DNA of 64,000 bases from Haliotis cracherodii (GCF_022045235.1 NW_027266275.1:53878001-53942000); one strand, 5' to 3'; shown: positions 2,455 through 64,000, counted from the stretch's first letter. Made by a program: numbers and translations. Notes: generated by a model from the sequence alone, not told the origin.

Positions 2455-2944
2455 CTTGTTCTTTGATTCCAATGTGAAAGGTTCCATTACCCAAGGTTGC
2501 CTGTTCTTCCCCAGTGATTAAAATGGTGTAGCGTAACTCTTCTTCAAGGGCAGGGTCGTCAAACCCGGAAGCGTTGATGTCACGGGGGAGCTGGTAGTAG
2601 AGGTCAAACTCACTCTCTGTGGGGAATGTTCCATTTCTAATGTACAACTCAAGGGTGACGTTGGCCATATCGGGGATCACCGTTATCCTGAGCGTCTCGC
2701 TGTCATTTCCGGACACACTCCATGTATGGTAAACCATGGACTCGTTTCCGGTGAGGACCGGATGTACGGCCACTTTGTTACTGCCGTTACCTGTCGCGCC
2801 TATGTCGATTATTATGTCAGCGTCTAGCTTATTGACTTTCACTTCATCGCCGCCGGAGTCGTAAAGATTCATGGTGAGGATGGGGGAGTTGACACTGTCG
2901 GCGCTGTTATCCCACACGTATGGATTTAACTGGGAGGTGACGAA
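2455..2944 (-). CDS. GAIN-B exon (upstream of the expected GPS)
   Basis: [40 protein letters not shown]...[15 protein letters not shown]...[10 protein letters not shown]; G|gtaaac donor. Confidence 0.9.
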
Positions 2945-5900
2945 CTGGAACGGGAATATCGGGAAAGGTTGTTATACACATAACATTGGGTTTGCTATAC
3001 ACATAACACATAAGGGTTTTCGAATATTACCGCTGTGTCATGGCGCGGGAAGCTAGAATCGGGTCCACACGTCGTACCTTAGTGGTGAAATCCAACCTAG
3101 AAGCATCTTCCCGAGGCAAGAGAGTTAACTGACTTTAAAAGTCCAGTTCCCACCCTTGCCGAACAAGGCTGGAATTACTTGGCTCGATTGTAGCGCCACC
3201 AGTGGCTTCACACAAAATGGTGGCGCCCGGCCAGGACGATCTGATCGATAATCAAGATCTATATTGTGATATAACGGGTCTTACATCGTGATTACAAACA
3301 TGAAAAGATTTGGAAAATTTCTGCTGACAACGAGTTAGCGGTGAACATGCTTTGCAAATCCTGCAATCGACCGAAATCTGCACGACAGTTTACGAACCGG
3401 ATTTCTATTTCGGTGCACGATTTTGATTGGACAATGCACAGACTCGTTAGTCCAGCCAAAATGTAACTCCATAATACCAGCCTAGTTCGGCAAGGGTGGA
3501 AACTGGACTTTTATAGTCAGTTAACTCTCTTGCCTCGGGAAGATGACCTAGAAGACAAGCAAACGCTTTAACCACTCTCCTTTTAGCAAACAGTTTATAT
3601 ATTAACCTGAATTAATTGTGATAATATTAATATATTAGAATTAGGAGATGAATATCATTTGCCTATAGTACAAGAAAAGCAGGGATAGTTTATTTCCTAT
3701 TTATCTTCATTGGTATCCATTACGACAGAAATTTGAGAGAATGTTACTGTTATAAAGGATGTTGGTCTTTATTTAAAATAACATATGGCATTTTCTGTTT
3801 AAGCAGATTATATTAGTCTGTGAATAGATGAATTCATAGATGTATATTTCTATTCCGAAATACCCCCCTTCCAAAAAAAGCAAAAAAAACAAAAACAAAC
3901 CCTGCCCCCTTCCATTTTCTCAGTATTTTAGGTCCCTACCAAATTAAATAAAGAGGCATAATTGGTGTAATTCATCACACAAGAACTGAACAACCACTTG
4001 GCTCTTCAAGAAGTGATATACTCTCTGTGGCACTACGTTGCTACATTATAAAGTGTTCCGGTTTTTAAGTGTATTATTTGTATAATATATTGGTTCGTTG
4101 ATATATTTATTTGTTGATATCTCATTCTTTTAACATCTGCAGCACCAAAGACGTTATTGCGAAAGTTGAGGTTTTTGTTCATAAAAAATAGAACCTTGTA
4201 TTTACAAACGTACATGTGTCACTTGGCACATAATTATCATGGTAAAAATATAATTAAGCGTTTGATCATTGAGGGTATTGTGTTGATCATAAATAGGGCT
4301 TTTATTTGACCTTATATCTCAAATATAGCGTTATGCATAAACATTGTATCACACAATGGTCCCACAAATACATAATCTACATAATTGTCTAGTTCGTATA
4401 CATGTATAGAAGGTGTACCTAGGTTCCGTCCCCCGCCGTGATATTGCTGGAATATTGCTTAAAGCGGCTGAAAACCATACTCACTCACACATTGATTCGT
4501 GAAGACCCGGGGTATAATAGGTCTTCAGCATCCCATGCTTGCCGTAAATAGCGACTATGTGCTTGTCGTAAGAGGCGACTAACGGGATCGGGTGGTCAGG
4601 CTCGGTGACTTGGTTGATACATGTCATCGTATCCAAATTGCGTGGACTGATGCTCATGATATCAATCAATGGATTGTCTGGAGCAGACTCGATTATTTAC
4701 AGACCGCCGTCATATAGCTGGAATATTGCTGAGTGCGGCGTTAAATAACAAACAAAACACTCACTCATTCTTGACTCACCTTGGTGTCTATGATGTGGCT
4801 TGTGACATTCTCCGTCACTATATCCCTGGAAGATGGCAACTTGAATGACCCTTCGTCTGCAGACAAAACAGAGTTACCTAACTTCGACGTCTCCTTCCTC
4901 TCTGCAACAACAGTAAACATTTGATTCTTCATGACAACAGGTGGCGCTCCGGGGACGCGTTTCTTCAGAATTGTCTTCACCACTGAATCTGCTACTTCCA
5001 GGGCCAGTTTAGTGATTTCCCGAGCCTGTAAAAACAGAATGAAGATGAGGATGCTTCGGAATTGATCGGACAAAGATAGCACTGCGGTCTAAGGTGCCGC
5101 AACTTGCTGTACGGAGTTGCGTTCCTTAGCCGTGCCAGGAACCATTGACATTGGGTTTGTGTTCCCGTTTCGCCATATTACATTGCTTTATCAGCACAAT
5201 TCCCATATTCCCATACTCTCTGGTTTCACCAAAGTGACAACTACGACCATCGTCCCTTTTGACTTTCTCCCACGTTAAGCTGACAATGACAGCAATGAAA
5301 TACGGTTCAAAACTGACTCGCAAGAACACACACATCCTTACCCCAGAGGTAATCGTAAAGGTCCAAGAAAGTCGACTGAATTAATGCTCTGCTCTCCTTG
5401 CAGACAATGACTTTAGAGATTGCACAATAAGTTCATTTTGTGTTAATTCATCAAATTAGAATAAAAACAACACTGGACCATGATAGCGATATACTAGGAA
5501 AACCTCTAACATAGATTGGTGTCAAGTCATAACGGTCTACAAAAGATGAACACGTGTTTGACCTTTGCCTGGGACTCAGAATCAGCTTGCCAAGCTGTTG
5601 TCGAGGACCCTTGTGTTGGTGATGGATCTGTTGGTGAAGTGTCATTGGAGGCACTTCCGGTCGCTTCAGTGCGGGCTGCCAAGATGATGTTCCCAAGGGC
5701 AGCGACAATGTCTGTTGAAAAATGACATGAAAATGCAGACCATCATCTTGTCAATATTGAAAGTGTTGGTCATATACTGCTGTTGGTCCTTAACGACATC
5801 CCAGATTATCCAGTGCAAAATATATCAAGATGGCGTCTCCTTCACAAACTATTTCTTAGGGACCATTTAATATTCTGATATCCTGGGTGGCGGGGGCATT

Positions 5901-8900
5901 TTGTTAGAGACATGATTTGTTTCAAGGAAACCTCAATAAAACTGTTATAAATAAAGTTTTTACCCACAAAATATCTCTTCATTTTCAAAATATTGTTTGT
6001 TTTTTTCTTTCACTTTTTTTCAATCCAGGATGACAAGGGTATACCTTCCGCAGCCTTTAGCTCCTGCTCCACCGACTGCGGTCTCTCCTCCTCAACCATC
6101 ACCTGGAATGTGTTCGCCATCGTTGACATCGTCGCCACAGTCATGTCCTGAATGAAAAGACAAAACGTCTCGTACTATACGAGGTGCCTTTCATTGTGAT
6201 CTAAACTATGTTGCTTGTGGATAGAGACGAGTAAATTAGACAAACCTCAACGGGAAGATGAATGGCCCTTTCAAAGCTCCCTTGCATTTGTTCATGTTGG
6301 GATATCTTCTCTCAACACCCATGATGGGATTAGTTCGGTATAGCAAGGTTTGCTTCGTGTATAACCTTATCGAACGCACGCACTGATTTGTTAAAGCATA
6401 AACACAAATTGGATTAAAACTTTCAGTTCAGAGTGTTTAATACGTTCTCAACACACCAATGAAGAGGAATATTTCGTATAATATTATTAACTTATTCATA
6501 TTTGAAACAGGAACAGACCCGCCAACTGCCACGCCTCCCCTTCTTCCACGCCTCCTGCCCACCCCGCCCACTAACCTGAGCTTCCTCCGACAGCTCCGTC
6601 GTCTGATGGGTTATCACCCTAAATGCCATGGCCGTCTGCTGTAGAGAGTCGAGGGTCAAGGCGTCTGTGGTCGCCAGGGACTTCACGACCTCCGTCCGCA
6701 GCTGGACATAAAAAGCATGACATAATTTACGTTTCCTCTTCTGACAGTTCATTATCTCAAATTCTAGGTTGTAAAATCTGGTTGAAGATAGTCATCGAGT
6801 TCTACCGAGAGGCTAGAGGAATTAAAATAACACGTGGTCTAAATACGTCAACATTTCTGCACAAGTCCTTAGTACAATTTAGTATTATTTTGTGCGAGTA
6901 TACATTGTAGCGCACTGTATTTTTCTCAAAGTCTTCACCCCAGCCGTTCACCCCAGAGCGCTCGGCGGCAGCCTTTAATTCCGACTTGATTGAATCGATT
7001 TGTAACTAAATTGAGTTCTTACTATCTTTAGGTAAAATAAAATTGAGTAACTTTCAAATTCAAAACGTTCCATCCAACAATCTTATTACGATCATAGGAA
7101 ATCTGAGGACTCCTCCATGAGAAATCACCTCAGGTAAACTTTCTGTTCAGTTGCTGTTTCTAAGTTCTCAGTGTGTGTTTGTTGCTTACTTCTTCACTCC
7201 GCTATTTGACGACGTCTTGTGTATAATCCAATCTGGACAAGACAATCCAAAATGATTGATTTTATGAGCAATCAACCAACTCCGTTACATCTGGTCAACT
7301 CTTACAGTAAGCATACTATTAAGATGCTGAGAACCTCGGTATTCCCATACTCCAACAAAGTAACGAAGTCAACCGTGCCTATATCAAACATGGTCCGTAT
7401 TTACAGAAAAGAATGTTGTTATCAAGACAAGGTATGACTATGATTATGACACGTCATGTTTTATAAATGAAAACAGTCAAATACTTTGGTTAAAAAACCC
7501 AAAAGTTCTTCTCTTATACTTATAACTTTCAGCAAAAACTTTCCAAAGATATTATAATAATTTTATCTGTTGTTGACATTAATGATAAGAATGTTAAATA
7601 ATTTGAGCAATGTGTTAATTATTGGGCTAGGTATTGATTTCTGACAGTATGATATCTTGGGCATATAATGACAACATGATATTCATCTTCAATAAAGGAT
7701 CTATCGAGGGAATTGCAGAAGATACAGAGTCTGTTTTCATAGGACATATTTAGATGTCTACCTATTTCAACTGTAAGTCTAAAATTATTGCATCTGAAAT
7801 TTGTAAATAATTTTATTAAGTGGATTTGAAAGATATAATTCAGGGGTTAATAAGGATTTATACTCTTTGCAATGTTTTCATTTTGGTGATTCATTAATAG
7901 TGGTTTTGAGTTTGTTTGAATTTAAAAAGGAAAAGATTTGAATCACCAATATTGTGTGTTATCCAAACAGTACCAAAACCATACTCAAATAAAGTATTTT
8001 AAATATTGATGCCCATGTTATTCTTCCACATCATGCAAGGATTTTAACATCACATATAACTGAAGTGGAAGTCTCTCTGTATCTAAATGACGCCCTGCAC
8101 CAATATTTAATTGCTCTACACGAGTAAGTGTACTGCCACATACTGTTATTTGTGTTTTTACTGAGATTAAGATATTTTTTTACAGAATTTAGAGTGAGCT
8201 GTTTCAATAAACTTACGTTATTTAGTCCCCCATATCTTGGGGTAACCATTGTATCAAATATTTTAAACATATCCATGAGATATCACGACATGAGATCTGA
8301 CCTACTTTTTTCAGGTACCTGTTTCTTGACACGAGAGCTTTATTTGATTGTTTGGCTAAACAACTTTGAGTTCCGATCCATGATAATTTTGGAGTGAATA
8401 TATCACCTAAATTTCTGTGAAAACTTACTTCTTCAACTTCAATTTCTTTTCCTTAATAAATTACAATTTTCAGACTGAAGGTGAGGCCCGCCATTCCTAA
8501 AAGCCATTATTGTTGTTTTATCTAAATTTACTTTCATACCTGTGACTTCACAGAAGTGATCAAGTGCATTTATATTTTTTTGAAGATGATTTGTAGTGTC
8601 TGACACAGCAGAAACAACATATGCATACATGAGAGCAAAGATATTCCTCCATTTTCTATCATAACAGTGATTAACTGATTTATGAAGATAATAAATTCAA
8701 TATCGATATAGTTATCAATAAACTAGTACCCGGAGGCAGAATCTATAAGATTACTCAACCCAAACTGGCACAGGTACTCCTCTCGTGTAAATATATAAAA
8801 GATAAGAATTCAAATTTGTTTCCGAGCTCTATATGCTTACACAGGTTAATGGTTCTTTAGGACATTGTCCTTTTAAGAATAGCAGTGTTAAGTTACTCTT

Positions 8901-11900
8901 TAGAGAGTGGAAATTGTCTGACCTGTTTTTCAAAATTATGTCTTATTGTGAAAATTGGTATTGTTTTTCTTTACAGTCTCATAATAACACAACGGTGGGT
9001 ATTTAAGAAATGAATAAACATTATTTATTTTCAAGCAGGAGGGTAATTTACAGGGGGTTGGAGAGAAAAAGCACATACTTTAATAGGGATGCTTTTATGC
9101 CATTGCAAACGGATTAACCCGCAGTTTTTATGGCTTACGAAACATGAGTTTATACTTTTTCAGAATTGAAAGAAAGTCGGTTTTCACCTGATTCAGCGTG
9201 TTCACGTGCGTTTGGGAACGTGGAAAATGTAAATTTGCTATGCTAAGTAACTGATATTTGGAAAGTCTGAATTCTACGTGTCATTGTTTCCGTGACCTTC
9301 ACCTCAACTCTCTTCTGTTTTTGTTCCCTTCGCTCATCCTCTACTGCAGTTGTTTCCGTTGGAGACGCTCCCGGAACCACAGTTGTGGTATCACCTGTCG
9401 AGATGGACGCCTGAAGAAAAAACGTCATCCTTATGCATATTGCACAACCAAATATACGCATCTAATAATGAGATGCAGTAAACAGCTGTCGATAAATTTA
9501 ATATTCAAATAGTTGATGTTTCTTCAACTAAGGACATATTGATGATAAACTACCAATTGAAGATATATCTACGATTTTAACAGTTCGGGATACCCTTGCA
9601 TTTGATTGTATCCTAATACAGTTGATTAGTTAGGATAGTTTATAATAAACCCACATTTGATTATGTACTTGCATATGCATATCTCACATCTGATTTGAGA
9701 ATTCGCCTAAAATTCAATCCCTTAGGGCGTGCAAATCAAGGGCAGATAACTATGTTCCTATGAAAACCATAGAGATTTACAAAACACTCTTCCAAGAAAA
9801 TTCCCTTTATCTTGAAACTTTTAGCATTTAAAGTCGATTAACCACAGTCAACCGTTGAGGTTATCAGTAACATCCCAAAATGGTATACCCCTTTGCAGTG
9901 CCTTACCTCTGCATTGGCGCTATCTTCGTTGATAAGGGAGGCAACTGCTACAATCAACTGTTTGGCCTCCTGCTCGCGGCCTGTGGACAGCAGTGACGAC
10001 AGCGTGCTGGAGGACCCGGATGTTAGGTTCAGGTACGTCTCCACGTTCTCCTTCACCTCGGGGGGCTTTACCTGGAACAGGCGAGATGATGCGGATGTGC
10101 GTGCAGGACAATGTTACATCACTAGGAGGCAACTAACAAATTGTGATTTCACCCGAGGACATGACGCATGCTTTCGACATGTAATTAGCCCTTTTAATTG
10201 ATAATTTGAACTGAATCTAACATTCTATCAAAGCACCTGCTGTGTAATCTGTTCAAATCAATGTGACATTCTTAGTATCACAACCAACAGTACAGTATTA
10301 CAACCAACAGTACAGTATTACAACCAACAGTATAGTATTACAACCAACAGCACAGTATTACAACCAACAGTACAGTATTACAACCAACAGTACAGTATTA
10401 CAAACAACAGCACAGTATTACAACCAACAGTACAGTATTACAAACAACAGTACAGTATTACAACCAACAGTACAGTATTACAAACAACAGTACAGCATTA
10501 CAAACAACAGTACAGTATTACAAACAACAGTACAGCATTACAACCAACAGTACAGTATTACAAACAACAGCACATTATTACAACCAACAGTACAGTATTA
10601 CAAACAACAGTACAGTATTACAAACAACAGCACAGTATTACAACCAACAGTACAGTATTACAAACAACAGTACAGTATTACAAACAACAGTACAGCATTA
10701 CAACCAACAGTACAGTATTACAAACAACAGCACATTATTACAACCAACAGTACAGTATTACAAACAACAGTACAGTATTACAAACAACAGCACAGTATTA
10801 CAAACAACAGTACAGTATTACAAACAACAGTTCAGCATTACAAACAACAGTACAGCATTACAAACAACAGTACAGCATTACAAACAACAGTACAGCATTA
10901 CAAACAACAGTACAGTATTACAACCAACAGTACAGCATTACAACCAACAGTACAGTATTACAAACAACAGTACAGCATTACAAACAACAGTACAGCATTA
11001 CAAACAACAGTACAGCATTACAAACAACAGTACAGTATTACAACCAACAATACAGTATTACAACCAACAGTACAGCATTACAACCAACAGTACAGTATTA
11101 CAAACAACAGTACAGCATTACAAACAACAGTACATCATTACAAACAACAGTACAACATTACAACCAACAGTCTTGACAGTACATTTATTCACTCTGCCAA
11201 CTACTATCAACTAGTATTTTGCTTTGTTAAATATCTCGGAATATATTCACCAAACAATGGTTATACATTCATACAAATCGAATATTGACAATATGTATGA
11301 ACATAAAAGCACTATAACCTAGTTTCTACAAAGGACGAGTTGGGGCATATACATATATTATCTACGTTGTTTATAACACGCCTGGTATTCACCCTATGTT
11401 CACCCTATCTATCGCATGACGTGTGACTGTACCACTGAACCGTTAGCCAAGTCTCGTAGTGCAAAGCCGCACAACAGTGTAGCAGCGTTAGTATCGTCAG
11501 AACATGCATAAAGTATGATAATCATACTAAGTACTGCGTCTGTTGCACCAGAAACGATAATAATACTTAGTACTGCGTCTATTGCATCAAGTACGATAAT
11601 AATGCTCAGTACTGCGTCTGGTGCACCAGATACGATAATAATACTTAGTACTGCATTTGTTGCACCAGACACGATAATAAAACCAAGTACTGCATCTGTT
11701 GCACAAGATACGATGATAATACTTTGTATTGCATCTGTTGCACCAGATACGATAATAATACTTTGTATTGCATCTGTTGGACCAGATAAGACAATAATAC
11801 TAAGTACTGCTTCTGGTGTACCTGATACGATAATAATACTTAGTACTGCGTCTGGTGTACCTGATACGATAATAATACTTAGTACTGCATCTGTTGCAAC

Positions 11901-50900: not shown

Positions 50901-53900
50901 CAGCAGATGTTGTTACTGTAGACGAATCAGCTGAAGATGACATCACATTAGACAAATCAGCTGAAGATGAGATCACAGTAGACGAATCAGTTAAAGATGA
51001 CATTACGGTTGACAAATCAGCTGAAGATGACATTACAGTAGACGGATCAGCCGACGATGACATTACAGTAGACGAATCAGCCAGAGTTGAAATTACAGTT
51101 GACGGATCCGCCGAAGTTGACATAACAGTGGACGAATCGGCTGAAGATGACAATAAAATAGCCGAATCAGCTGACGATGACATCACAGTAGAGGAATCAG
51201 CTGAAGTTGACATTACAGTAGACGAATCTTCCGAAGCTGGCAATACAGTAGACGAATCAGCCGAAGATGACATGGTAGGTGAAGAGGTGGAGGTTTCGAT
51301 CGAAGATGACATCATGGTTGATGAATCAGCTGACGATGACATTAGAGTTGACGAATCCGCCGAAGCTGGCAATACAGTAGACGAATCAGCCGAAGTTGAC
51401 ATTACAGTTGACGAATCCGCCGAAGTTGACATTACAGTGGACGAATCAGCCGAAGTTGACATTACAGTAGACGAATCAGCCAAAGTTGACATTACAGTAG
51501 ACGAATCAGTCGAAGCTGGCAATACAGTAGACGAATCAGCTGAAGATGACATGGTAGGTGAAGAGGTGGAGGTTTCGATCGAAGATGACATCACAGTTGA
51601 TGAATCAGCAGACGGATCAGCTGGTGATGACATAACAGTTGACGAATCGGCTGATGACGACAATACAGTAGACGAATCAGCCGAAGTTGACATTACAGTA
51701 GACGAATCAGCCGAAGTTGACATTACAGTTGACGAATCAGCCGAAGTTGACATTATAGTAGATGAATCCGCCGAAGGTGGCAATTCAGTTGAGGAATCAA
51801 GCGAAGTTGACATTACAGTAGATGAATCAGCTGACGATGACATTAGAGTTGACGAATCCGCCGAAGTTGACATTACAGTGGACGAATCAGCTGACGATGA
51901 CATTACAGTTGACGAATCAGCTGAAGATGGCATTAGAGTAGACGAACCAGACGAAGTTGACATTACAGTTGACGAATCATCCGAAGTTGACATTGCAGTA
52001 GACGGATCAGCCGACGATGACATTACAGTAGACGAATCAGCCGACGATGACATTACAGTAGACGGATCAGCTGAAGATGACATTACAGTTGACGAATCAG
52101 CTGACGATGACATTACAGTAGACGGATCAGCCGACGATGACATTACAGTAGACGGATCAGCCGACAATGACATTACAGTGGACGAATCAGCCGACGATGA
52201 CATTACAGTAGACGAATCAGCTGAAGATGACATAACGGTTGACATATCAGCTGAAGATGACATGGTAGGTGAAGTGGTGGAGCTTTCGATCGAAGATGAC
52301 ATCACGGTTGATGAATCAGCATACTGATCAGCTGACGATAACATTACAGTTGACGAATCAGCTGAAGATGACATAGTAGGTGAAGTGGTGGAGGTTTCGA
52401 TCAAAGATGACATCACGGTTGATGAATCAGCAAACGGATCAGCATGAGATGACATAACAGTTGACGAATCAGCTGAAGATAACATTACTGTTGAATCAGA
52501 CCATGAATCAGACGTCGCAATGCCACTACTTCCTACTGAAACATGTTCAGTGTAAAATGATATGTCTTCGGTGGTGCTGCCTGCATCACTGCTGAAGAGG
52601 GTAGGAGCTGGGGGCATCAACGTTAAAGCAAGCGATGACGATAATGATAATGATAATGATGTTTCTGCAATAGTTTCCGAAAAGTTAGTGATGAATGATT
52701 CAAGTGTATGGGCCTGTGTTACCTTTGTGAATTCTGTCGACGATAGGCTTTCCAGCGGAGAAGCCACAGCTTCAGTTGAGGTGACCAGTGATGAAGGTAA
52801 TAGATTATCAGTTGGGGTCATAGTTGTGGAAGGTTCAGCGAAATCAGCAGATGTTAAAGTTGATATCACAGTTGAAGAAGCAGCAGATGGAATGGCAGTT
52901 GGCGAAGCTTCTAATGGGATCGTGGATGTAGAAACTGCAGAGGAATCAGCAGACGTATCAGCTGAAGATGACATTACAGAAGAAAAATCCGCTGAAGCTG
53001 GCAATACAGTAGACAAATCAGCTGAAGATGACATGGTAGGTGAAGAGGTGGAGGTTTCGATCGAAGATGACATCACAGTTGATGAATCAGCAGACGGATC
53101 AGCTGGTGATGACATTACAGTAGACGAATCAGCCGAAGTTGACATTGCAGTTGACGAATCAGCTGAAGATGACATTACAGTAGACGAATCAGCCGAAGTT
53201 GACATTACAGTTGACGAATCAGCCGAAATTGACATTACAGTTGACGAATCAGCCGAAGTTGACATTACAGTAGACGAATCCGCCGAAGCTGGCAATTCAG
53301 TTGAGGAACCAGCCGAAGTTGACATTACAGTAGATGAGTCAGCTGACGATGACATTAGAGTTGACGAATCCGCCGAAGTTGACATTACAGTGGACGAATC
53401 AGCTGAAGATGGCATAACAGTAGACGAACCAGACGAAGTTGACATTACAGTTGACGAATCATCTGACGATGACATTACAGTAGACGGATCAGCTGAAGAT
53501 GACATTACAGTTGACGAATCAGCCGACGATGACATTACAGTAGACGGATCAGCCGACAATGACATTACAGTGGACGAATCAGCCGACGATGACATTACAG
53601 TAGACGAATCAGCTGAAGATGACATTACAGTTGACGAATCAGCTGACGATGACATTACAGTAGACGAATCAGCTGAAGATGACATAACGGTTGACATATC
53701 AGCTGAAGATGATATGGTAGGTGAGGTGGTGGAGCTTTCGGTCGAAGATGACATCACGGTTGATGAATCAGCATACTGATCAGCTGACGATAACATTACA
53801 GTTGACGAATCAGCTGAAGATGACATAGTAGGTGAAGTGGTGGAGGTTTCGATCGAAGATGACATCACGGTTGATGAATCAGCTGAAGATAACATTACTG

Positions 53901-56900
53901 TTGACTCAGACCATGAATCAGACGTCGCAATGCCACTACTTCCTACTGAAACATGTTCAGTGTAAAATGATATGTCTTCGGTGGTGCTGCCTGCATCACT
54001 GCTGAAGAGGGTAGGAGCTGGGGGCATCAACGTTAAAGCAAGCGATGACGATAATGATAATGATAATGATGTTTCTGCAATAGTTTCCGAAAAGTTAGTG
54101 ATGAATGATTCAAGTGTATGGGCCTGTGTTACCTTTGTGAATTCTGTCGACGATAGGCTTTCCAGCGGAGAAGCCACAGCTTCAGTTGAGGTGACCAGTG
54201 ATGAAGGTAATAGATTATCAGTTGGGGTCATAGTTGTGGAAGGTTCAGCGAAATCAGCAGTTGTTAAAGTTGATATCACAGTTGAAGAAGCAGCAGATGG
54301 AATGGCAGTTGGCGAAGCTTCTAATGGGATCGTGGATGTAGAAACTGCAGAGGAATCAGCAGACGTATCAGCTGAAGATGACATTACAGAAGAAAAATCC
54401 GCTGAAGATGACATTACAGTAGACGATTCAGCTGAAGATGACACTACAGTAGACGAATCAGCTGAAGATGACATTACAGTTGACGAATCATCTGACGATG
54501 ACATTACAGTTGACGAACCAGCCGAAGTTGACATTACAGTTGACGTATCAGCTGAAGATGACATTACAGTAGACGAACCAGCTGAAGATGACATTACAGT
54601 AGACGAATCATCTGACGATGACATTACAGTAGACGAACCAGCCGAAGTTGACATTACAGTTGACGTATCAGCTGAAGATGACATTACAGTAGACGAATCA
54701 GCTGAAGATGACATTACAGTTGACGAATCAGCTGACGATGACATTACAGTAGACGAATCAACTGACGATGACATTACAGTTGACGAACCAGCCGAAGTTG
54801 ACATGACAGTAGACGAATCCGCCGAAGTTGACATTACAGTAGACGTATCAGCTGAAGATGACATTACAGTTGACGTATCAGCTGAAGATGACATTACAGT
54901 AGACGAATCAGCTGAAGATGACATTACAGTTGACGAATCAGCTGACGATGACATTACAGTTGACGAACCAGCCGAAGTTGACTTTACAGTTGACGTATCA
55001 GCTGAAGATGACATTACAGTAGACGAATCAGCTGAAGATGACATTACAGTTGACGAATCAGCTGACGATGACATTACAGTTGACGAACCAGCCGAAGTTG
55101 ACATTGCAGTTGACGTATCAGCTAAAGATGACATTACAGTTGACGAATCAGCTGAAGATGACATGACAGTAGACGAATCAGCTGTAGATGATATTACAGT
55201 TGACGAATAAGCCAAAGAAGACGTTACAGTAGGCGAATCAACTGAAGATGACATGGTAGGTGAAGAGGCAGCGGTTTCGATCGAAGATGACATCAGGGTT
55301 GACGAAGGGGTAGACATTTCAGCTGAAGATGACATTACAGCAGACCAACCTGCAGACGGATCAGCCGACGATGACATTACAGAAGACGAATCAGCCGAAG
55401 TTGACATTACAGTTGATGAATCAGCTGAAGATGACATTACAGTTGACGAATCAGCTGAAGATGGCATTACAGTAGACGAGGCAGCAGATGAAGAAACAGT
55501 TGATGGAGTTTCAGATGAGATAACAGAAGAATCAGCATATGCCAAAGATGAAGATGATGTCACGAATGATGAAATAGTAGATGAATGGGCAGTTGATGAA
55601 GCTTCAGATGAGAGCATAGCAGTAGCATCTGTAGATAAGATGACAGAAGCAGAAGCTGACAGTTGCTTGGTGGGATCAGTTTGCTCTGCTGTTTGAGTCT
55701 CGGATGAAGACACAGTGGACTCGGAGGAGTGTTGAGATAGCAGACTAACAGATGTCAGCAGTGCAGCGCTTGGTAGTTCGGTTGACGAGCCATGCGAGCT
55801 ATCAACAACCGAATCAGAATAAAGGTCACTTACTGGCGAACTTGTAATGAGGCTTACTGCTTCTGGTGAGCTAGTCGGTGAGGACATTACGTCTGAGGAC
55901 TGTCCTTGGGTGGTGAGTTCAAGGTAGGAGGACATCAGAGAACTCAGAGTCTCTGTAGAGTCTGTCTGGCTGATGATACTGGCTGCTGACTCAATCACGA
56001 CCTCTGTCAACAAAAAGCACAAACACGTCATACATCTCAAGGCATTACTAGAAGGTATTTGATGATGACAAAAAAGGATATGTTTATTATGTAACTATGT
56101 GAGGGGTGAAATCGAGGAAACCTGATGTGACTGGAATCTATGCTGTTCCATCTTTCAAATGCGATTTAGAGTGTGGCATTGGGCTGAGGTGAAATGGGGT
56201 TAACGTCATGTAATAGGTTATTGCACTTCTACAGCAACATGTGTGTCTGCATACCAGGAAGGGCACTATACCACGGCGGCGTGAGTGGGTATGATTGTAC
56301 GCCATTTTAAGAAACAGTCCAGCCATATCAAAGATTTGGACTCCAAGAAACGGATTCACGCTTTGTACTCATGGGTCTCCGGTGTGACTGGGGACGTTTG
56401 GGTGGCCTAGTTGTTAAAGTGTTCGTTCGTCACGCCGAAGGTTCGATTTATTACATGGGTATAATGACTGAAGCTCATGTATTGCCTCCCGATGTGGTAT
56501 TGCTGGAGTATTGCTAAGAGCAATACACAAATCACTCACTTCGCTGTGATGCTTCAACCGTTACACGCCGCCCCAGTTTTGGCTATGAGGCATGTAGAAG
56601 GGACATTAAACCTCGAGTCATCACTCTCAGATCGACAGAAATGTATAATAAAAAGTTTGTATAATAAGTAACTTTACATAGTACCAGGCTTTATAATTTG
56701 TATTTTGGATGTCAATATGTTCGCTTTTCAATTCTCATTGTATTGTTTTATGCTATTCGATTTTGATTAATTTGTTTGTTTGTTTGTTATTGAAAACCGC
56801 ACTTGGCAATATTCCAGTGATTTGACGGCGGTATGTAAATAATCGAGTCAGGACCAGACAACCCAGTGACTGACGTCATAACCATCGATCTACGCAATTA

Positions 56901-59900
56901 GGCTACGATGACATGCATCGGTAGCGAGCCGGACCACCCGAAACCGTTAGTCGCCTATTAAAAGACAAGAATGGTTTGCTGAAGACCGATTCTGACCGAT
57001 ACTAACCAACTCTGTGTTATACGATGTCGTAACATGAAGAATTTGTGTTGGATTACTGACAACACGGCAATACTGACCAAAGAAATTTGTCTGATTCGTT
57101 TCTACGCTGAAGTTTGACGAGGAATTGCTGAGTGCGTCCATGAAAACGCCAGTGAGGGTTCTGCCGTCGATGACGGTGGTGGAGTTGTCGCTGCTGCTGT
57201 TGCTGGTTGTGTTGGGAGTCTTCAATACGATTGTGAAATCAACCTCCACACTTCCTTCTCTGAAATGAAAGTATCGAGGTTAAAGTCACGTCTACATCGC
57301 GAAACAGACACGTAAGTGCACAATACTAGTTGTGCTCAGGGTCTACATCACGAAACAGACACGTAAGTGTCAATACCAGTTGTGCTCAGCGTGTGTTACA
57401 AGTGGCAACTGATGGGTGTAACATGCTTGTCGGAAATGTCATATAGGGACCGAATAGTTGTTATTCGGGGCGGGGGTCTGGGATATCAAATAATCGATAC
57501 CTTAATACAATTTACCTTTTCTGATTTAACAGGTTGAAATAAATCACGATATATACTGCTGAACAAACTTACAAAAATCAATCTCTTACAGTGGACGCGA
57601 ATCTGCATAACCCGTTCAGTCCATAACAACAATTGGGGAGATTTGCCCATGGGCCAGTGATTTCAACAACGACAGCGTTGAGTCGACGTGATGCATTGAC
57701 GAATATACGTAGAACATGAACTCCACGTGCAGTGTGTCACACACAGTGCACACCCTCCTGTTCAATAGAAATGTATTCTTCTGTGGCGCGCAGAAAACCT
57801 ACAGTTCCAAAACGCGGTGTCCAAACCGACTTTTCTTCATTTTTTTTAGCTGTATAAGCAATGACGTACTTCCCGTTATGTGAAAGTATTTTAGATCATA
57901 AAGATCACTATTCAATCTTTTCCATGTATCATTTCATAAAAAAGACACAGAAATTCATTCCTGGCTATGATTGATAGGAGATATGCGACCTACCTGAAGC
58001 CTTGGATGACGGCAGAGTGATAGTTATCCGACAGGGAGCTCGACAGAAGTATTGAATCCAGCTGAAAATAAGAACAATGAAGAATTTATGAATGAGTGAG
58101 TGAGTGATACTACTTGGCAGTCTATCAAGTTTACCCTCTCTTTTGAACTATGATACAATAATTCCTTCGTATGCAAATATATCACCGGGGGATAAATAGA
58201 GGTTATCACACAAGCGTGATAACCTCTTTATCATATAATGTCATTGTTTAATTCTGTGCTTCAAAATAGCTTTCCCTCTCTCACAAACATTACCGAAACA
58301 TTGCGAGTTTTCCTGGAATGCGCGCATTAATATTTATTACGTCACAGGGTAAGTGATGTGTGTGTAGGACTGTGACAGTAGCCAATATAGTTCCAACTGA
58401 AATCTGTTTCATATACAGTGGCGAAGCAACTTATACGCAAAACAACAGTTGTTTTTAATTGCCTTTCGTGGCAATCCATCGGTCTGTCCGCTAGAGTAAC
58501 TGCCCTTTGTCAAAGGGAAGCTACTCTAACCCTAGTCTTTGAGTCACGGCCACGGTCAGACGTTGTTGACAGTCGGTCTGTCCTTTCATAATGTACACAC
58601 AGCGACAAATCGAAACAAGGTAACAGTTCAAACATATTTCGGCCGAATCCAACCATTTTGATTTGTTGAGAAGGTTTCAAGCCACAAAGGTCTACAAGCA
58701 CAGATATGGTCACTGATCCCGCTTGGCTAGGCCTCGTGCCCTCGCAAAATTGTTTCGAAATTTATATCTCGAAAGTTGCCAAAACTTATAAAATGCCTTA
58801 GCTACGTCACGGTTAGACACTGATTTTCAGTATATTAGACTGTTCGTTTGATAATGATAGCAATTATCCCTGTAGTTTATCCAGATTCACGATGGTTAAT
58901 TCTGACTCGATCGCCGAATGACAAGGGCGACGCCATGTTTGTTTATAAACAGTGAAAGTAGTCCCTACTTGACCTTAGATATTTGCATCTCTATCCGCAT
59001 ATGACCCCAACGGATATCGTTTTTATCCGTTGGCTTTATCCTGCCGAGAAACCTACCCATTATATGAATAAAAGCGTATATCTTTATTAGAATCGCCAAT
59101 AATGTCCTATATCACCAGTTCATTTTGTTTTCAATGCTGTGATTTCGAGTGGGTGAGTGAGTTGGGTTTAACGCCGCTTTAAACATTATTCCAGTTATAT
59201 CGTGGCGTGTCAGCTTAATGTGGGAGGAAAGCCCCTAAGTGATGCAGGTCTCAGACGTTTACCACTTCGGTGAAACCCACGAATACGGGTATGGTGCTGA
59301 CAAACCTAGAAACATAATTGGGGCGAACCTGGATTCGGACCCACAATAATAGGTTTCTGGCGTGTCCAAGGGACGCAACTCTGCACAGCGAATCGCGGCG
59401 CCTTAGACGACTTGGCCCCCTGTGATTTTGAATACTGACTGTAATGGCCCTGTCACACTACAACGTATACCAGTAACGTATGGCGACGAATGAGAATGTG
59501 AAAACGCCGACAACGCTGAAACACGCTATGGATAAGTTAGGTGTAAATTGTATACGTTAAAAGCACGCTGGTATACGTTGTTGTACGCCGAGGCTTAAAA
59601 ACAGTGCATGCACAAAATTTTCAGCGTATGGGCACGTATGAACCTTTTACATATCTAGACTGCTGTCGCCTTTCGTTGTAATTTGATGAATGGGTGTACA
59701 CTACTAGTTATATTACCGAGGGATCCGTTTTTGGCACCTTTCCCCTACACTGAGCGCGTTAGTCATACGTTACTCAAAAGCTGGGTATACGCTGGCCATA
59801 CGTTGAACACGCCAGACACACGCTGGCAATACGCTTTTATACCCTGTCATAAGTTATGTATAAGTCAGAGATACGCTACTAACTCGTTAAGAATACGCTA

Positions 59901-60907
59901 TGGATACGCTAAAATCATGTTTTTTCGATGAAAGCTCGATGTATGACAGCGTACTAACCTTCTTTTACACGCTAGGTGCAAGTTACTCTGAAACGTTGTA
60001 GTGTGACAGGGCAATAAAATATGGACAAAAATATTACTTCGAGGCGGTATGTTCACTATAATTCCCTCATGATGTCAACAATGTGTTAATTTGATTGCTC
60101 GGAAGTATGATTAAGAATTGGATTGCAAAAATAACGAATTTCAATATCTTTACTCCACGCAAAAGTTAAGCATGGCAACCAGCTGTATGCAGTATACAAG
60201 CAATGAAGGCCGTTATCCGACTGAAACATGAGGAATTTGTCTCAACTACTCAGATAAAGGTTCCTAAAGTTTTAAAACGACCTGTTAAGAAGAAATTTCA
60301 AATTGGAAACGTATATATTTTATCTAATGTAAATACAAAAATGGATGGCAAGGATCAATATTGTTAAAATAAAGTGGACTTTGCATCTACGCCTATACAT
60401 CACGCTTACTATCCATTCAAACAATGGCAATTCATCCTTCAAGCCTAGTTATCCATCATCCATCTATCTCACCCTCCTATCCACGCTTCATCAATAAATT
60501 CATCACACTTCCCATCCATCCATCACTCTATAAACAACCCAGCATCTAAGCAGCCACACTTAGCCACCCCCATCTGTCTGTCCATCCGATCAGACAGCGT
60601 GTCGTCTGTCAATCGGAACTTACCAGATTGATGATTTTATCTTCCAAGTCGACGAATGCCGACGTGTTGCTGTACAGGAAGTCCGGGTTCCAGTCTATCC
60701 CGTGAATGATGCGGAGTCTCCCGTGTATGTGAATCCTGTCCTCACTCAGGGTGAGATCCCTCCGGACTCGGTGGTGGGGAGGCTCCAGTGAAGGGGAGGG
60801 GGTGCTGTACAGAAGGTGTTTCGGCAACTTGTAGGTGTTGTCGCCATTGTTGTGGCTAGCTTTGCTGGCGTCTTTGCTGATCACGTTCGCAGAATCTACG
60901 GACGTCC
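2455..60907 (-). CDS. Giant multi-exon polycystin-1/REJ-like receptor with SEA, mucin, cbEGF, PKD, REJ and GAIN regions (partial at both ends; 32 exons predicted in window)
   Basis: Manually chained GT-AG exons with consistent phases, about 23.6 kb coding if exon 4 uses the 47008 donor. Contains GSVVV SEA motifs, DxNEC...CxNxxGSYxC cbEGF repeats, WDFGDG PKD motifs, REJ-type segments ([17 protein letters not shown]) and GAIN-type segments (NPYVWDNS). Confidence 0.85.
3104..3545. mobile_element. Non-autonomous DNA transposon (Mutator-like MITE)
   Basis: ~60-bp near-perfect TIRs (catcttcccgaggcaagagagttaactgac...) and a 9-bp direct repeat acctagaag at 3095-3103 and 3546-3554. Confidence 0.85.
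4780..5025 (-). CDS. GAIN exon
   Basis: [33 protein letters not shown]...GSFKLPS...IIDTK; AAG|gtgagt donor. Confidence 0.88.
5563..5711 (-). CDS. GAIN-A exon
   Basis: [19 protein letters not shown]...ADSESQAK; tttcaacag acceptor; phase 1 to 0. Confidence 0.75.
6045..6147 (-). CDS. GAIN-A exon
   Basis: [34 protein letters not shown]; tcattcag acceptor, G|gtatac donor. Confidence 0.75.
6576..6701 (-). CDS. GAIN-A helical exon
   Basis: [42 protein letters not shown], typical of polycystin-1-family helical region; CAG|gttagt donor. Confidence 0.85.
7450..8680 (-). mobile_element. Degenerate LINE RT / C-terminal fragment
   Basis: [33 protein letters not shown] and a downstream [10 protein letters not shown]...LCIFCN...[14 protein letters not shown] remnant. 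Confidence 0.75.
9303..9410 (-). CDS. Linker exon
   Basis: [36 protein letters not shown]; tttcttcag acceptor, GAG|gtgaag donor. Confidence 0.75.
9907..10071 (-). CDS. REJ C-terminal / helical GAIN-A exon
   Basis: [15 protein letters not shown]...[19 protein letters not shown]; ttccag acceptor, GAG|gtaagg donor. Confidence 0.85.
10277..11170. repeat. 20-bp tandem repeat (caa(a/c)caacagtacag(t/c)atta), about 44 copies, intronic
   Basis: Directly visible 20-bp periodicity. Confidence 0.95.
11515..12165. repeat. 39-bp minisatellite abutting the donor of exon 12164-12432
   Basis: Unit approximately agtactgcatctgttgcaccagatacgataataatactt, about 16-17 copies. Confidence 0.9.
12164..12432 (-). 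CDS. REJ exon
   Basis: [19 protein letters not shown]...[47 protein letters not shown]; CAG|gtgcag donor. Confidence 0.88.
13075..13421 (-). CDS. REJ exon
   Basis: [12 protein letters not shown]...[17 protein letters not shown]; ttgcag acceptor, G|gtaagc donor. Confidence 0.9.
14071..16912 (-). CDS. Large exon: about 7 PKD repeats and start of REJ module
   Basis: ORF 14067-16670 stays open upstream to a ccaacag acceptor at 16913-16914. Motifs TYGDG, DYGDG, DFGDN, NFGGG, WDFGDG, FDMGD; REJ-type ESYDPD...FTYVWWC; donor AC|gtaagt. Confidence 0.92.
17412..17552 (-). CDS. cbEGF exon 11 (after SEA3)
   Basis: [47 protein letters not shown]; 141 nt, phase 1 to 1. Confidence 0.9.
17850..18678. repeat. 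40-bp minisatellite derived from the SEA3 exon end plus splice donor, about 20 copies
   Basis: Unit ctcaatacctgtgacgtatatatcagattggttgatgacc; period 40 (17961, 18001, 18041...). Confidence 0.95.
18647..18860 (-). CDS. SEA3 C-terminal exon with GSVVV motif
   Basis: ctccacag acceptor, G|gtattg donor; [37 protein letters not shown]...INQSDIYVT. Confidence 0.85.
19102..19247. other. Assembly gap (N run) inside the intron between the two SEA3 exons
   Basis: Run of n. Confidence 1.
19842..19969 (-). CDS. SEA3 N-terminal exon
   Basis: ttcccag acceptor, ACC|gtaagc donor; [43 protein letters not shown]. Confidence 0.85.
20550..20669 (-). CDS. cbEGF exon 10
   Basis: [40 protein letters not shown]; 120 nt. 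Confidence 0.9.
21676..21795 (-). CDS. cbEGF exon 9
   Basis: [40 protein letters not shown]; 120 nt. Confidence 0.9.
22608..22724 (-). CDS. cbEGF exon 8
   Basis: [39 protein letters not shown]; 117 nt. Confidence 0.9.
23487..23603 (-). CDS. cbEGF exon 7
   Basis: [39 protein letters not shown]; 117 nt. Confidence 0.9.
23818..23934 (-). CDS. cbEGF exon 6
   Basis: [39 protein letters not shown]; 117 nt. Confidence 0.9.
24321..24437 (-). CDS. cbEGF exon 5
   Basis: [39 protein letters not shown]; 117 nt. Confidence 0.9.
25766..25882 (-). CDS. cbEGF exon 4
   Basis: [39 protein letters not shown]; 117 nt. Confidence 0.9.
26341..26628 (-). mobile_element. tRNA-derived SINE-like element with (GAGT)n end; near-identical copy at 59150-59420
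   Basis: Shared body ...gggattcgaacccac...gcgaatcgcggcgccttagacgac; B-box (GGTTCGAATCC on the minus strand). Confidence 0.7.
27090..27206 (-). CDS. cbEGF exon 3
   Basis: [39 protein letters not shown]; 117 nt. Confidence 0.9.
27389..27505 (-). CDS. cbEGF exon 2
   Basis: [39 protein letters not shown]; 117 nt. Confidence 0.9.
28173..28289 (-). CDS. cbEGF exon 1
   Basis: [39 protein letters not shown]; 117 nt, AG/GT bounded. Confidence 0.85.
28918..30597 (-). CDS. Exon 9: mucin-like exon with about 16 copies of a 22-aa (66-bp) repeat [22 protein letters not shown]
   Basis: 608-aa ORF; aattccag acceptor, G|gtaagt donor; 1680 nt, phase 1 to 1. Confidence 0.8.
30853..30906 (-). CDS. Exon 8: 54-nt phase-1 symmetric linker
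   Basis: ccttacag acceptor, G|gtatga donor; [18 protein letters not shown]. Confidence 0.65.
31145..31281 (-). CDS. Exon 7: SEA2 with canonical GSVVV motif
   Basis: cttgcag acceptor; (R)[45 protein letters not shown]; donor G|gttaac. Confidence 0.8.
32250..32317 (-). CDS. Exon 6: SEA2 middle (68 nt)
   Basis: ttttgtag acceptor, AG|gtagag donor; [22 protein letters not shown](R). Confidence 0.85.
32563..38166 (-). CDS. Exon 5: Thr/Ser/Pro mucin (PSDTTTSA-type repeats, 26-aa repeats) ending in the N-terminal part of SEA2
   Basis: 1901-aa ORF; ctattccag acceptor, TTC|gtgagt donor; ends [35 protein letters not shown]. Confidence 0.85.
41220..41455. repeat. Interspersed repeat family (copies at about 4495-4760 inverted, 20240-20460, 20910-21085, 56770-57000, 63065-63140)
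   Basis: Shared core catgagcatcgatccacgcaattggg...gaccacccgatcccgttagtcgcctcttacgacaagcat. Confidence 0.75.
42741..44030 (-). mobile_element. Full-length mariner (DD34D) transposon with disrupted transposase
   Basis: Perfect 30-bp TIRs (cgagggctggctgaaaagttctaagcctaa), TA on both sides, 1290 bp; motifs WVP (followed by a stop), MDETWIH and [13 protein letters not shown] split over several frames. Confidence 0.95.
44775..44998 (-). repeat. 75-bp tandem repeat x3 (25-aa [25 protein letters not shown])
   Basis: Copies start at 44781, 44856 and 44931. Confidence 0.85.
45603..45770 (-). mobile_element. Short tRNA-derived SINE (related copies at about 13860-14020 and 56400-56540)
   Basis: gagtgagtatggttttacgccg...atcgaacccgggtcctcggcgtgacgagcgaacgctttaacc; tRNA-like head on the minus strand. 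Confidence 0.65.
46831..56003 (-). CDS. Exon 4: giant Ser/Thr-rich mucin exon (10-aa [10 protein letters not shown] repeats plus larger duplicated blocks); 3' end uncertain (stop at 46831, or an internal donor such as 47008)
   Basis: 3069-codon ORF; ttgttgacag acceptor at 56004-56005 in phase 1, matching exon 3; candidate phase-0 donors at 55858, 55834 and 47008. Confidence 0.75.
57078..57259 (-). CDS. Exon 3: SEA1 C-terminal part with GSVEV motif
   Basis: catttcag acceptor, G|gtcagt donor; (R)[15 protein letters not shown]...[10 protein letters not shown]; phase 2 to 1. Confidence 0.8.
57994..58061 (-). CDS. Exon 2: SEA1 middle (68 nt)
   Basis: ttttcag acceptor, AG|gtaggt donor; [22 protein letters not shown](R); phase 0 to 2. 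Confidence 0.8.
59150..59420 (-). mobile_element. SINE copy, same family as 26341-26628
   Basis: Near-identical sequence by eye. Confidence 0.7.
59445..60014. mobile_element. Non-autonomous PIF/Harbinger-like MITE
   Basis: TIR gccctgtcacactacaacgt / acgttgtagtgtgacagggc, flanked by TAA on both sides. Confidence 0.7.
60624..60907 (-). CDS. Exon 1 in window: pro-region, furin-like RVRR site, N-terminal part of SEA domain 1
   Basis: tatcacag acceptor and CTG|gtaagt donor; encodes ...[51 protein letters not shown]. Confidence 0.8.
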
Positions 60908-63599: not shown

Positions 63600-64000
63600 C
63601 GTGCCATAGGCATGTTACAGGTGGTCACACGTCAGAATATTGTTGCCCAAACGGTGCATGTTTCTCAATCTGTCATTGGCAGATTGTGAGGCCGATACCA
63701 ACAAACACATAACGTCGATGATCGACGCCGCTCTGGAAGCCCAAGGGATACAACTGTAGCCCTGAACAGATTAGTCAGAACGATGGTATGAAGAAATCGG
63801 TTGCAAATTGCCACTCAGATAAGGGACCGATTGCAACAGGTCAATACTGTCGGGACAACATCATTACACCACTCGAGGTGCGATATGCAGGACGTGTTGG
63901 GAAACGCTTCATCTTTCAAGGTCGTTCCAGGATTGTGACCCAGTTCATCCAACAGCAAACCATCTATGTCATACCATGGCCTGCCCTCAGACCTGACTTG
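63600..64000 (+). mobile_element. Degenerate Tc1-like transposase fragment
   Basis: End of window reads SRIVTQFIQQQTIYVIPWPALRPDL, resembling the Tc1 WPAxSPDLNPIE motif; left boundary approximate. Confidence 0.55.

Follow-up and report, generated by a model that had tools for sequence, protein, structure and literature searches.

Polycystin-1 relatives with a channel-like C-terminus (PKD1L2, PKD1L3, PKDREJ and sea-urchin REJ) have in common PKD repeats, a REJ domain, a GPS with the motif HL/T (slashes mark cleavage or splice positions throughout), a PLAT domain placed after the first transmembrane (TM) segment, and 11 hydrophobic segments with the Polycystin_dom and PKD_channel domains. In the human PKD1 proteins and ten SpREJ proteins, the heads that precede this body are C-type lectin, SUEL, WSC, leucine-rich-repeat or single EGF modules, and neither SEA domains nor mucin regions are mentioned (PMC1934368). 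Here we describe a polycystin-1-type gene that shares the whole of this body plan and most of which is contained in a 64-kb stretch of DNA (hereafter the window; C12:53878001-53942000) from chromosome piece C12 of the black abalone, Haliotis cracherodii. The gene is encoded by the minus strand, to which all features below belong unless stated otherwise. Unlike the described PKD1 and SpREJ heads, its own combines mega-exons rich in Pro, Thr and Ser (PTS) with a set of 11 calcium-binding EGF (cbEGF) modules and with SEA modules, two or three in number. We consider it likely that this is one large receptor gene of the polycystin-1 family, whose ectodomain has been lengthened by a head of the membrane-mucin type; the combination of a mucin/SEA/cbEGF head with a polycystin-1-like body is real and is conserved in molluscs.

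Several other described proteins resemble parts of this receptor. LOV-1 of Caenorhabditis elegans is likewise a polycystin-1 relative with a GPS cleavage site. Its N-terminus is reportedly Ser/Thr-rich and mucin-like (a description said to go back to Barr and Sternberg in 1999), and we know of no SEA domain, cbEGF array or PKD repeats in it. The main text of PMC9829181, from which the word 'mucin' is absent and which does not confirm the mucin-like description, has LOV-1 cleaved at the GPS, its N-terminal fragment passing to the extracellular matrix and its C-terminal fragment travelling with PKD-2. The SEA-type transmembrane mucins (MUC1, MUC3, MUC12, MUC13 and MUC17) share with the abalone gene PTS tandem repeats, the SEA motif G/SVVV and an EGF-SEA-EGF arrangement near the membrane-proximal part. 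Adhesion G-protein-coupled receptors (GPCRs), among them ADGRF5 with its SEA domain and ADGRE/EMR-CD97 with cbEGF arrays, similarly place an adhesive head in series with GAIN/GPS. The SEA domain of ADGRF5/GPR116 lies in the N-terminal fragment (PMC13604961), so that SEA and GAIN can evidently share one receptor.

The body of the abalone protein shows every feature of polycystin-1 membership for which it was tested. Elements were called from stop-to-stop reading frames and from Pfam scans of single exons, and the SEA, mucin, cbEGF, EGF, PKD and REJ elements were all recovered on the minus strand where an initial annotation, made from the sequence of the window, had placed them. The same annotation had proposed that GPS, PLAT and 11-TM exons be sought to the left of base 1, and they are indeed present in the 60 kb of flank examined there. 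This flank holds a split GPS (CNHL/TAF; 8516-8172 and 7169-6897 in left-flank numbering) together with the first TM segment, two PLAT exons, a large TM exon, matches to Polycystin_dom (E 5e-31) and PKD_channel (E 3e-33), and a final exon of coiled-coil-like sequence. The RefSeq model of the gene, XP_071106159.1 ('polycystin family receptor for egg jelly-like'; 3,121 residues), is 100% identical to the PKD/REJ exon of the window, and 23 of its 26 tested junctions match the genome at 20/20 residues. The scores in this model are 248.8 bits for the REJ domain, 40.9 for the GPS, 54.5 for PLAT (PF01477), which is placed between the first and second hydrophobic segments (residues 2068-2184), 133.8 for Polycystin_dom and 148.4 for PKD_channel. 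A hydropathy scan finds 11 hydrophobic segments after the GPS, the topology being predicted, and the HL/T site stands beside the first of them, where cleavage is predicted from the motif. The order after the GPS is thus TM1, PLAT, ten further TM segments with Polycystin_dom and PKD_channel, and a coiled-coil-like tail. Since the GPS, PLAT and TM exons are present, the polycystin-1 body is complete, and the possibility that no GPS or TM exons follow the window falls away.

The extracellular part of this body lies within the window. An exon of 2.8 kb (14071-16912) encodes about seven PKD repeats (PF00801, E 6e-37, in four Pfam stretches; the spacing of six signature motifs corresponds to about seven repeats) and the first 206 positions of REJ. 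Positions 2-452 of the REJ model (PF02010) are spread over four exons, of which this first one matches with E 1e-30 and the three others lie at 13421-~13075, 12432-12164 and 10071-9907 (9907-13421). Between REJ and GPS are six exons (9410-9303, ~6701-6618, ~6168-6045, 5711-5563, 5025-4780 and 2944-2455; 2455-9410), which are presumed to form the GAIN region and have no Pfam match of their own. Among the REJ exons lies an intronic minisatellite (10263-12224) that has a strong GC/AT skew and several open frames, on both strands; a NikR_C match on the frame 11412-12224 was dismissed as a minisatellite/repeat artefact.

The junctions between head and body were examined next. Read contigs from four runs could be placed on the segment 13100-19090; the runs are guessed to be RNA, which is argued from the lack of introns in the contigs. 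Spliced contigs join the N-terminal exon of the third SEA module (SEA3-N, 19842-19969), its C-terminal exon (SEA3-C, 18647-18860; motif FTNG/SVVVNA), the one cbEGF exon that separates SEA3 from the PKD repeats (EGF_CA, 17412-17552), the PKD/REJ exon and the next REJ exon. The joint 13421/14071 was found in three runs and 17552/18647 in one. The EGF-to-PKD junction 17412 to 16912, which the initial annotation had singled out for checking, was confirmed in two runs (16912/17412), and one contig of 351 nucleotides (nt) covers SEA3-C, EGF and PKD together. This joint encodes the same residues as the RefSeq model; its reading as 16914/17414 with non-canonical ends was discarded, as it corresponds to a canonical GT..AG intron (17411/16913) combined with a synonymous C>A change at position 17413. 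An assembly gap (a run of N at 19102-19247) interrupts the intron across which SEA3-N is spliced to 18860. Contigs of two runs leave the genome match at 18860 and continue as exact 19842-19871, so the gap is intronic and holds no exon, and the reading frame across it is that of the RefSeq model.

Two repeats were noted in the introns of this segment. A minisatellite of repeated donor-like junction copies occupies 17850-18678, in the SEA3-C/EGF intron, where the spliced contig uses the first donor (18647/18646). A short element at 13851-13979 is covered by many RNA-like contigs in all four runs, at a depth of hundreds to thousands, each continuing into unrelated sequence, and probably represents a dispersed repeat that is transcribed widely. 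Neither an Rfam nor a tRNA scan of the window, this element included, gave a match.

Upstream of SEA3 lie ten cbEGF exons (20550-28289), each 117-120 nt long and of phase 1-1: 28289-28173, 27505-27389, 27206-27090, 25882-25766 and 24437-24321 (exons 1-5), and 23934-23818, 23603-23487, 22724-22608, 21795-21676 and 20669-20550 (exons 6-10). The EGF_CA E-values of the exons scanned range from 1e-5 to 1e-9. The array is preceded by two giant exons of mucin type. The upstream one, mucin2 (32563-38166; 1,868 codons within an open frame of 1,903 codons at 38211-32503), is composed of 29% T, 24% S and 8% P and contains about 113 copies of a tandem unit of 27-30 nt, i.e. repeats of 9-10 residues. Its acceptor (ttccag/ at 38166) is of phase 0, and its 3' end encodes the N-terminal part of the second SEA module (SEA2-N; QKILQF/GTGAGT). 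SEA2 is completed by a middle exon of 68 nt (32250-32317) and a C-terminal exon (31145-31281; motif R-EG/SVVVEF), as recognized with the guidance of orthologues, and is followed by a short linker exon (30853-30906) and by mucin3 (28918-30597; open frame 30721-28886, 612 codons). The latter carries 17 copies of a 22-residue repeat (unit 66 nt), a non-repetitive S/T-rich tail and a phase-1 donor (G/GTAAGT); a Helicase_C match on its frame is a repeat artefact. In composition and repeats these exons correspond to the long PTS tandem-repeat domains of membrane mucins, their glycosylation being predicted.

The SEA modules, three of which with G-S-V-type cleavage motifs were found in the window, are poorly visible to domain searches. 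In single-exon Pfam scans only SEA2-N is seen directly (22 bits), and taken singly the SEA exons of the window stay below threshold, because introns split the domain. The orthologous SEA2 scores 63.8 bits in Haliotis asinina and 54.6 bits in Gigantopelta, while the scallop equivalent of SEA3, which aligns with the abalone module, scores 37.1 bits. The G-S at the MUC1-type cleavage position is kept in all SEA copies across species, and at motif level these modules have the G/SVVV type of autoproteolysis signature known from membrane mucins (NGSVVVNA in SEA3). A search of PDB sequences with SEA3-C returned only chance matches to designed proteins.

It could be argued that prediction programs merged two genes, one with the mucin/SEA/cbEGF exons and the other with the PKD/REJ/TM exons, given that mucin-rich regions are prone to annotation errors and that the H. 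cracherodii RefSeq model holds only the part from the seventh cbEGF onward. However, this model begins at a Met inside that seventh module (window 23556) and lacks a signal peptide, so it is itself 5'-truncated; the spliced contigs link SEA3 and EGF to PKD; canonical sites with matching phases are found at every junction, including all those from mucin2 to the seventh cbEGF; and independent models of three other gastropods show the elements in this order too, as do bivalve models for the cbEGF-SEA-EGF-PKD part. We therefore regard a merger of separate genes as very improbable. The initial annotation had named transcripts from two such genes as the result that would overturn it: for SEA3/EGF and PKD this outcome is largely excluded by the spliced contigs, while for the mucin exons the argument comes from gene models and splice sites.

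One of these models is XP_048238653.1 of Haliotis rufescens ('uncharacterized'; 6,593 residues), which falls into the same 90% cluster as the H. cracherodii model. It maps onto the window exon by exon, from mucin2 through SEA2-C, the linker, mucin3, the ten cbEGFs, SEA3, EGF and PKD/REJ on to the last exon. The 68-nt middle exon of SEA2 is skipped in it and included in the models of H. asinina ('polycystin-1-like'; 4,628 residues) and Gigantopelta aegis (4,774 residues), both of which have Pfam SEA matches above threshold and the order mucin, SEA, mucin, 8-9 cbEGF, SEA, EGF, PKD, REJ, GPS, PLAT, channel. Bivalve models (Argopecten, Ylistrum, Potamilus and Mya) share cbEGF-(SEA)-EGF-PKD-REJ. 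The architecture, which the initial annotation had supposed to be uncatalogued, is thus already present in RefSeq/UniProt, where the models of H. asinina, Gigantopelta aegis, Ylistrum balloti and Argopecten irradians combine SEA, EGF_CA, PKD, REJ, GPS, PLAT and PKD_channel. The design, which molluscs have conserved, is represented in the databases by unstudied automated models, named 'polycystin-1-like' or 'uncharacterized'. A literature search found no paper describing a polycystin headed by mucin, SEA and cbEGF elements. In a model of the prawn Macrobrachium, 2,285 Ser-rich residues precede PKD-REJ-GPS-PLAT; together with LOV-1, this shows that polycystin-1 relatives have mucin-like heads repeatedly.

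The H. cracherodii genome contains at least 10 REJ-bearing loci, most of them on C12 (at 31.25, 40.81, 63.78, 63.87, 63.93 and 65.08 Mb), with others on C1, C11 and C21, and weaker matches besides. One, C12:53835384-53835806 on the plus strand, is situated about 43 kb left of the window, just past the 3' end of the gene and opposite to it. Together these loci form an expanded polycystin-1-like family.

From the acceptor at 38166 at least, the order of elements is mucin2, SEA2, mucin3, ten cbEGF, SEA3, cbEGF, about seven PKD, REJ and GAIN/GPS (HL/T), and the part from 38166 to the C-terminus may be taken as a single unit of about 5,900 residues, the orthologous proteins that guide this view being automated predictions. 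The proposal of a membrane-mucin-type head fused to a polycystin body is well borne out by this unit, in which PTS repeats, a GSVVV-type SEA and EGF-SEA-EGF stand ahead of a complete polycystin-1-type body. Membrane mucins, by contrast, have a single-pass TM segment and a short cytoplasmic tail right after SEA/EGF, which in abalone are replaced by PKD-REJ-GAIN and the 11-TM body, and the abalone EGFs form a ten-unit calcium-binding array. As regards adhesion GPCRs, the membrane part of the abalone receptor is of polycystin type and not a family-B2 7TM domain: no 7tm_2 match was obtained in the H. cracherodii, H. asinina and Gigantopelta models, and the receptor is therefore not an adhesion GPCR. 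Relatives in Mya arenaria have been automatically named 'AGRE1-like'.

Some observations weigh against the view that one gene encodes this mucin-headed receptor. The placement of mucin2, SEA2, mucin3 and the cbEGF array in a single gene is deduced from gene models and splice sites, the contigs covering 13100-19090, and the runs that yielded spliced contigs are RNA by conjecture. Abalone SEA3 itself lies below Pfam significance. The orthologous proteins, as automated predictions, all start inside a mucin exon without a signal peptide, and crude scans of 38.2-46.8 kb and 57.3-84 kb revealed no signal-peptide exon above chance level. Finally, the cleavage at SEA and GPS, the glycosylation, the partner channel and the function of the receptor are all predicted. 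Since the part from mucin2 on has no signal peptide, an upstream part must exist, and a signal-peptide exon must lie upstream of mucin2.

What this upstream part might be is the question raised by a further block of elements at the right end of the window. SEA1 consists of an N-terminal exon (60624-60907; candidate acceptors 60935, 60932 and 60907, so that its 5' limit is uncertain), which ends in AATCTG/GTAAGT in phase 0 and is weakly similar to SEA2-N, a middle exon of 68 nt (57994-58061; acceptor TTTTCAG/, donor CAG/GTAGGT), located with a small profile made from orthologous SEA regions, and a C-terminal exon (57078-57259) with the motif FR-EG/SVEVDF and a phase-1 donor (G/GTCAGT). A furin-type RVRR motif is encoded about 15 residues ahead of the SEA1 core, at 60750-60800 (frame 60950-60612). 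The middle exons of SEA1 and SEA2 are equal in length, have the same phases and use canonical sites, and the two are, by their exon structure, paralogous three-exon modules. The giant exon mucin1 (46837-56003; about 3,055 codons within an open frame of 3,087 codons at 56094-46834) has an acceptor in phase with the SEA1-C donor. It is Ser-rich (S 33%, T 13%) yet Pro-poor (3.8%), and it comprises 10-residue repeats (unit 30 nt) and some 1,300 non-repetitive codons.

The initial annotation joined this block to the receptor, giving one chain with an ectodomain of about 7,900 residues and three SEA modules. The chain stands from mucin2 to the C-terminus, whereas the membership of SEA1 and mucin1 is unproven, and while all three SEA modules are in the window, their presence within one protein is likewise unproven. 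In its fullest form, this model makes SEA1 and mucin1 the 5' part of the gene, with a mucin1 donor before the TGA spliced to 38166 and a product of about 9,000 residues. Both blocks lie on the same strand and in the expected order, with only transposon remains and no other gene between them, and the identical three-exon structure of SEA1 and SEA2 would fit a mucin-SEA unit that was duplicated inside a single gene. The model would also provide something upstream of mucin2, where the lack of a signal peptide calls for it. Phase-0 GT sites at 47007 (GCA/GTGAGT) and 48318 match the phase-0 acceptor 38166, although in-frame Val codons yield such donor-like sites by chance. No stop interrupts the 1,300 non-repetitive codons that precede the TGA, so mucin1 is still translated and constrained as far as about 46.9 kb. 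On the other hand, the frame ends in an in-frame TGA (46833-46835) adjoined only by weak GT sites and no strong donor, the H. rufescens model lacks SEA1 and mucin1, a spliced sequence across 38166 was sought and not found, and for SEA1, too, the nearest 20 kb show no signal peptide. That SEA1 and mucin1 (about 3,200 residues) are in the same transcript as the receptor is thus unproven, and we see the full-length model as possible, with the balance tilting against it.

The sequence behind the TGA points in another direction. For nearly 1 kb (45860-46832, about 325 codons) the mucin1 frame continues with only three stops (46833, 46791 and 46167) before passing into noise, and in this it resembles a shortened last exon. 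The SEA1/mucin1 block may therefore be a separate gene or an isoform: a gene for a secreted protein of SEA1 and mucin1, in which a nonsense change, easily tolerated in a terminal exon, has cut the last exon short, with the receptor starting at its own small first exon between 46.8 and 38.2 kb. The noise that follows the recently decayed frame, together with a mariner-like insertion, would be in keeping with this. A weak candidate first exon is present at 38867, with a phase-0 GT at 38819, but its donor scores 3.1 as against 4.1-7.0 for four RNA-indicated donors (three joints and one loose-end inference), and matches of this kind arise by chance about once per 8 kb. A mucin with an N-terminal SEA alone would also be an odd product, and no annotated protein matching mucin1 was retrieved in a search saturated by low-complexity candidates. 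We put the chances of the two-gene or isoform arrangement a little below even.

Protein searches at both edges were negative: the non-repetitive end of mucin1 gave no match from a candidate list saturated by low-complexity sequences, and neither a match to codons 1-141 of the mucin2 frame nor a spliced fragment across 38166 was obtained. The remains of a mariner/Tc1-like transposase, with a helix-turn-helix-like and a DDE-like frame, lie between mucin1 and mucin2 (42809-43938). The 20 kb upstream of SEA1 contain mostly microsatellite and transposon-like frames. A signal-peptide-like start, MLWAAMTVFACLYTSV, is encoded on the minus strand at 80845-80977 (window numbering extended to the right, the window ending at 64000); its strong phase-1 donor at 80844 fits the phase-1 acceptor 60907, and it is a chance-level candidate.

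Returning to the receptor as one gene from mucin2 to the channel, its composition suggests how it could work. The activation of polycystin-1 and of adhesion GPCRs is ascribed to force that strips the N-terminal fragment at GAIN/GPS, and in membrane mucins the SEA domains are regarded as points of mechanical release. Self-cleavage would be expected at each SEA and at HL/T, in analogy to SEA domains of the MUC1 type and to the GAIN/GPS of polycystin-1 and LOV-1. The PTS exons, if densely O-glycosylated, would form a stiff rod of the order of a micrometre, and the cbEGF array a calcium-rigidified rod with binding surfaces. The SEA modules (G/SVVV) and the GPS (HL/T) would cleave themselves on folding, so that the mature receptor would be a set of non-covalently held fragments. 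Drag or adhesion on the mucin/cbEGF head would then load the SEA and GAIN joints, the former acting as sacrificial release points, and loss of the N-terminal fragment at GAIN would uncover the stalk, with activation of the 11-TM body. The last six, channel-like segments would probably pair with a PKD2-like subunit; both this PKD2/TRPP partnership and the tether function of the head are predicted from the domains present.

Should SEA1 and the channel belong to one receptor of about 9,000 residues, there would be four self-cleaving joints (three SEA and the GPS), in a micrometre-scale tether that breaks stepwise and gates a TRPP-type channel complex. We hold this to be doubtful; if true, such a receptor would amount to a natural force-fuse chain, for which neither polycystins nor mucins nor adhesion GPCRs offer a described counterpart.

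The annotations of these genes are 5'-truncated in every species examined, which means that the true N-termini of the proteins are not in current models. As it stands, this mollusc family unites SEA and GAIN/GPS devices in a single polypeptide with a cbEGF array and a mucin rod of great length. Provided that its fragments behave as predicted, it would offer a natural test case for the transmission of force to a polycystin body, and would illustrate how the PKD1 family exchanges its ectodomain heads.

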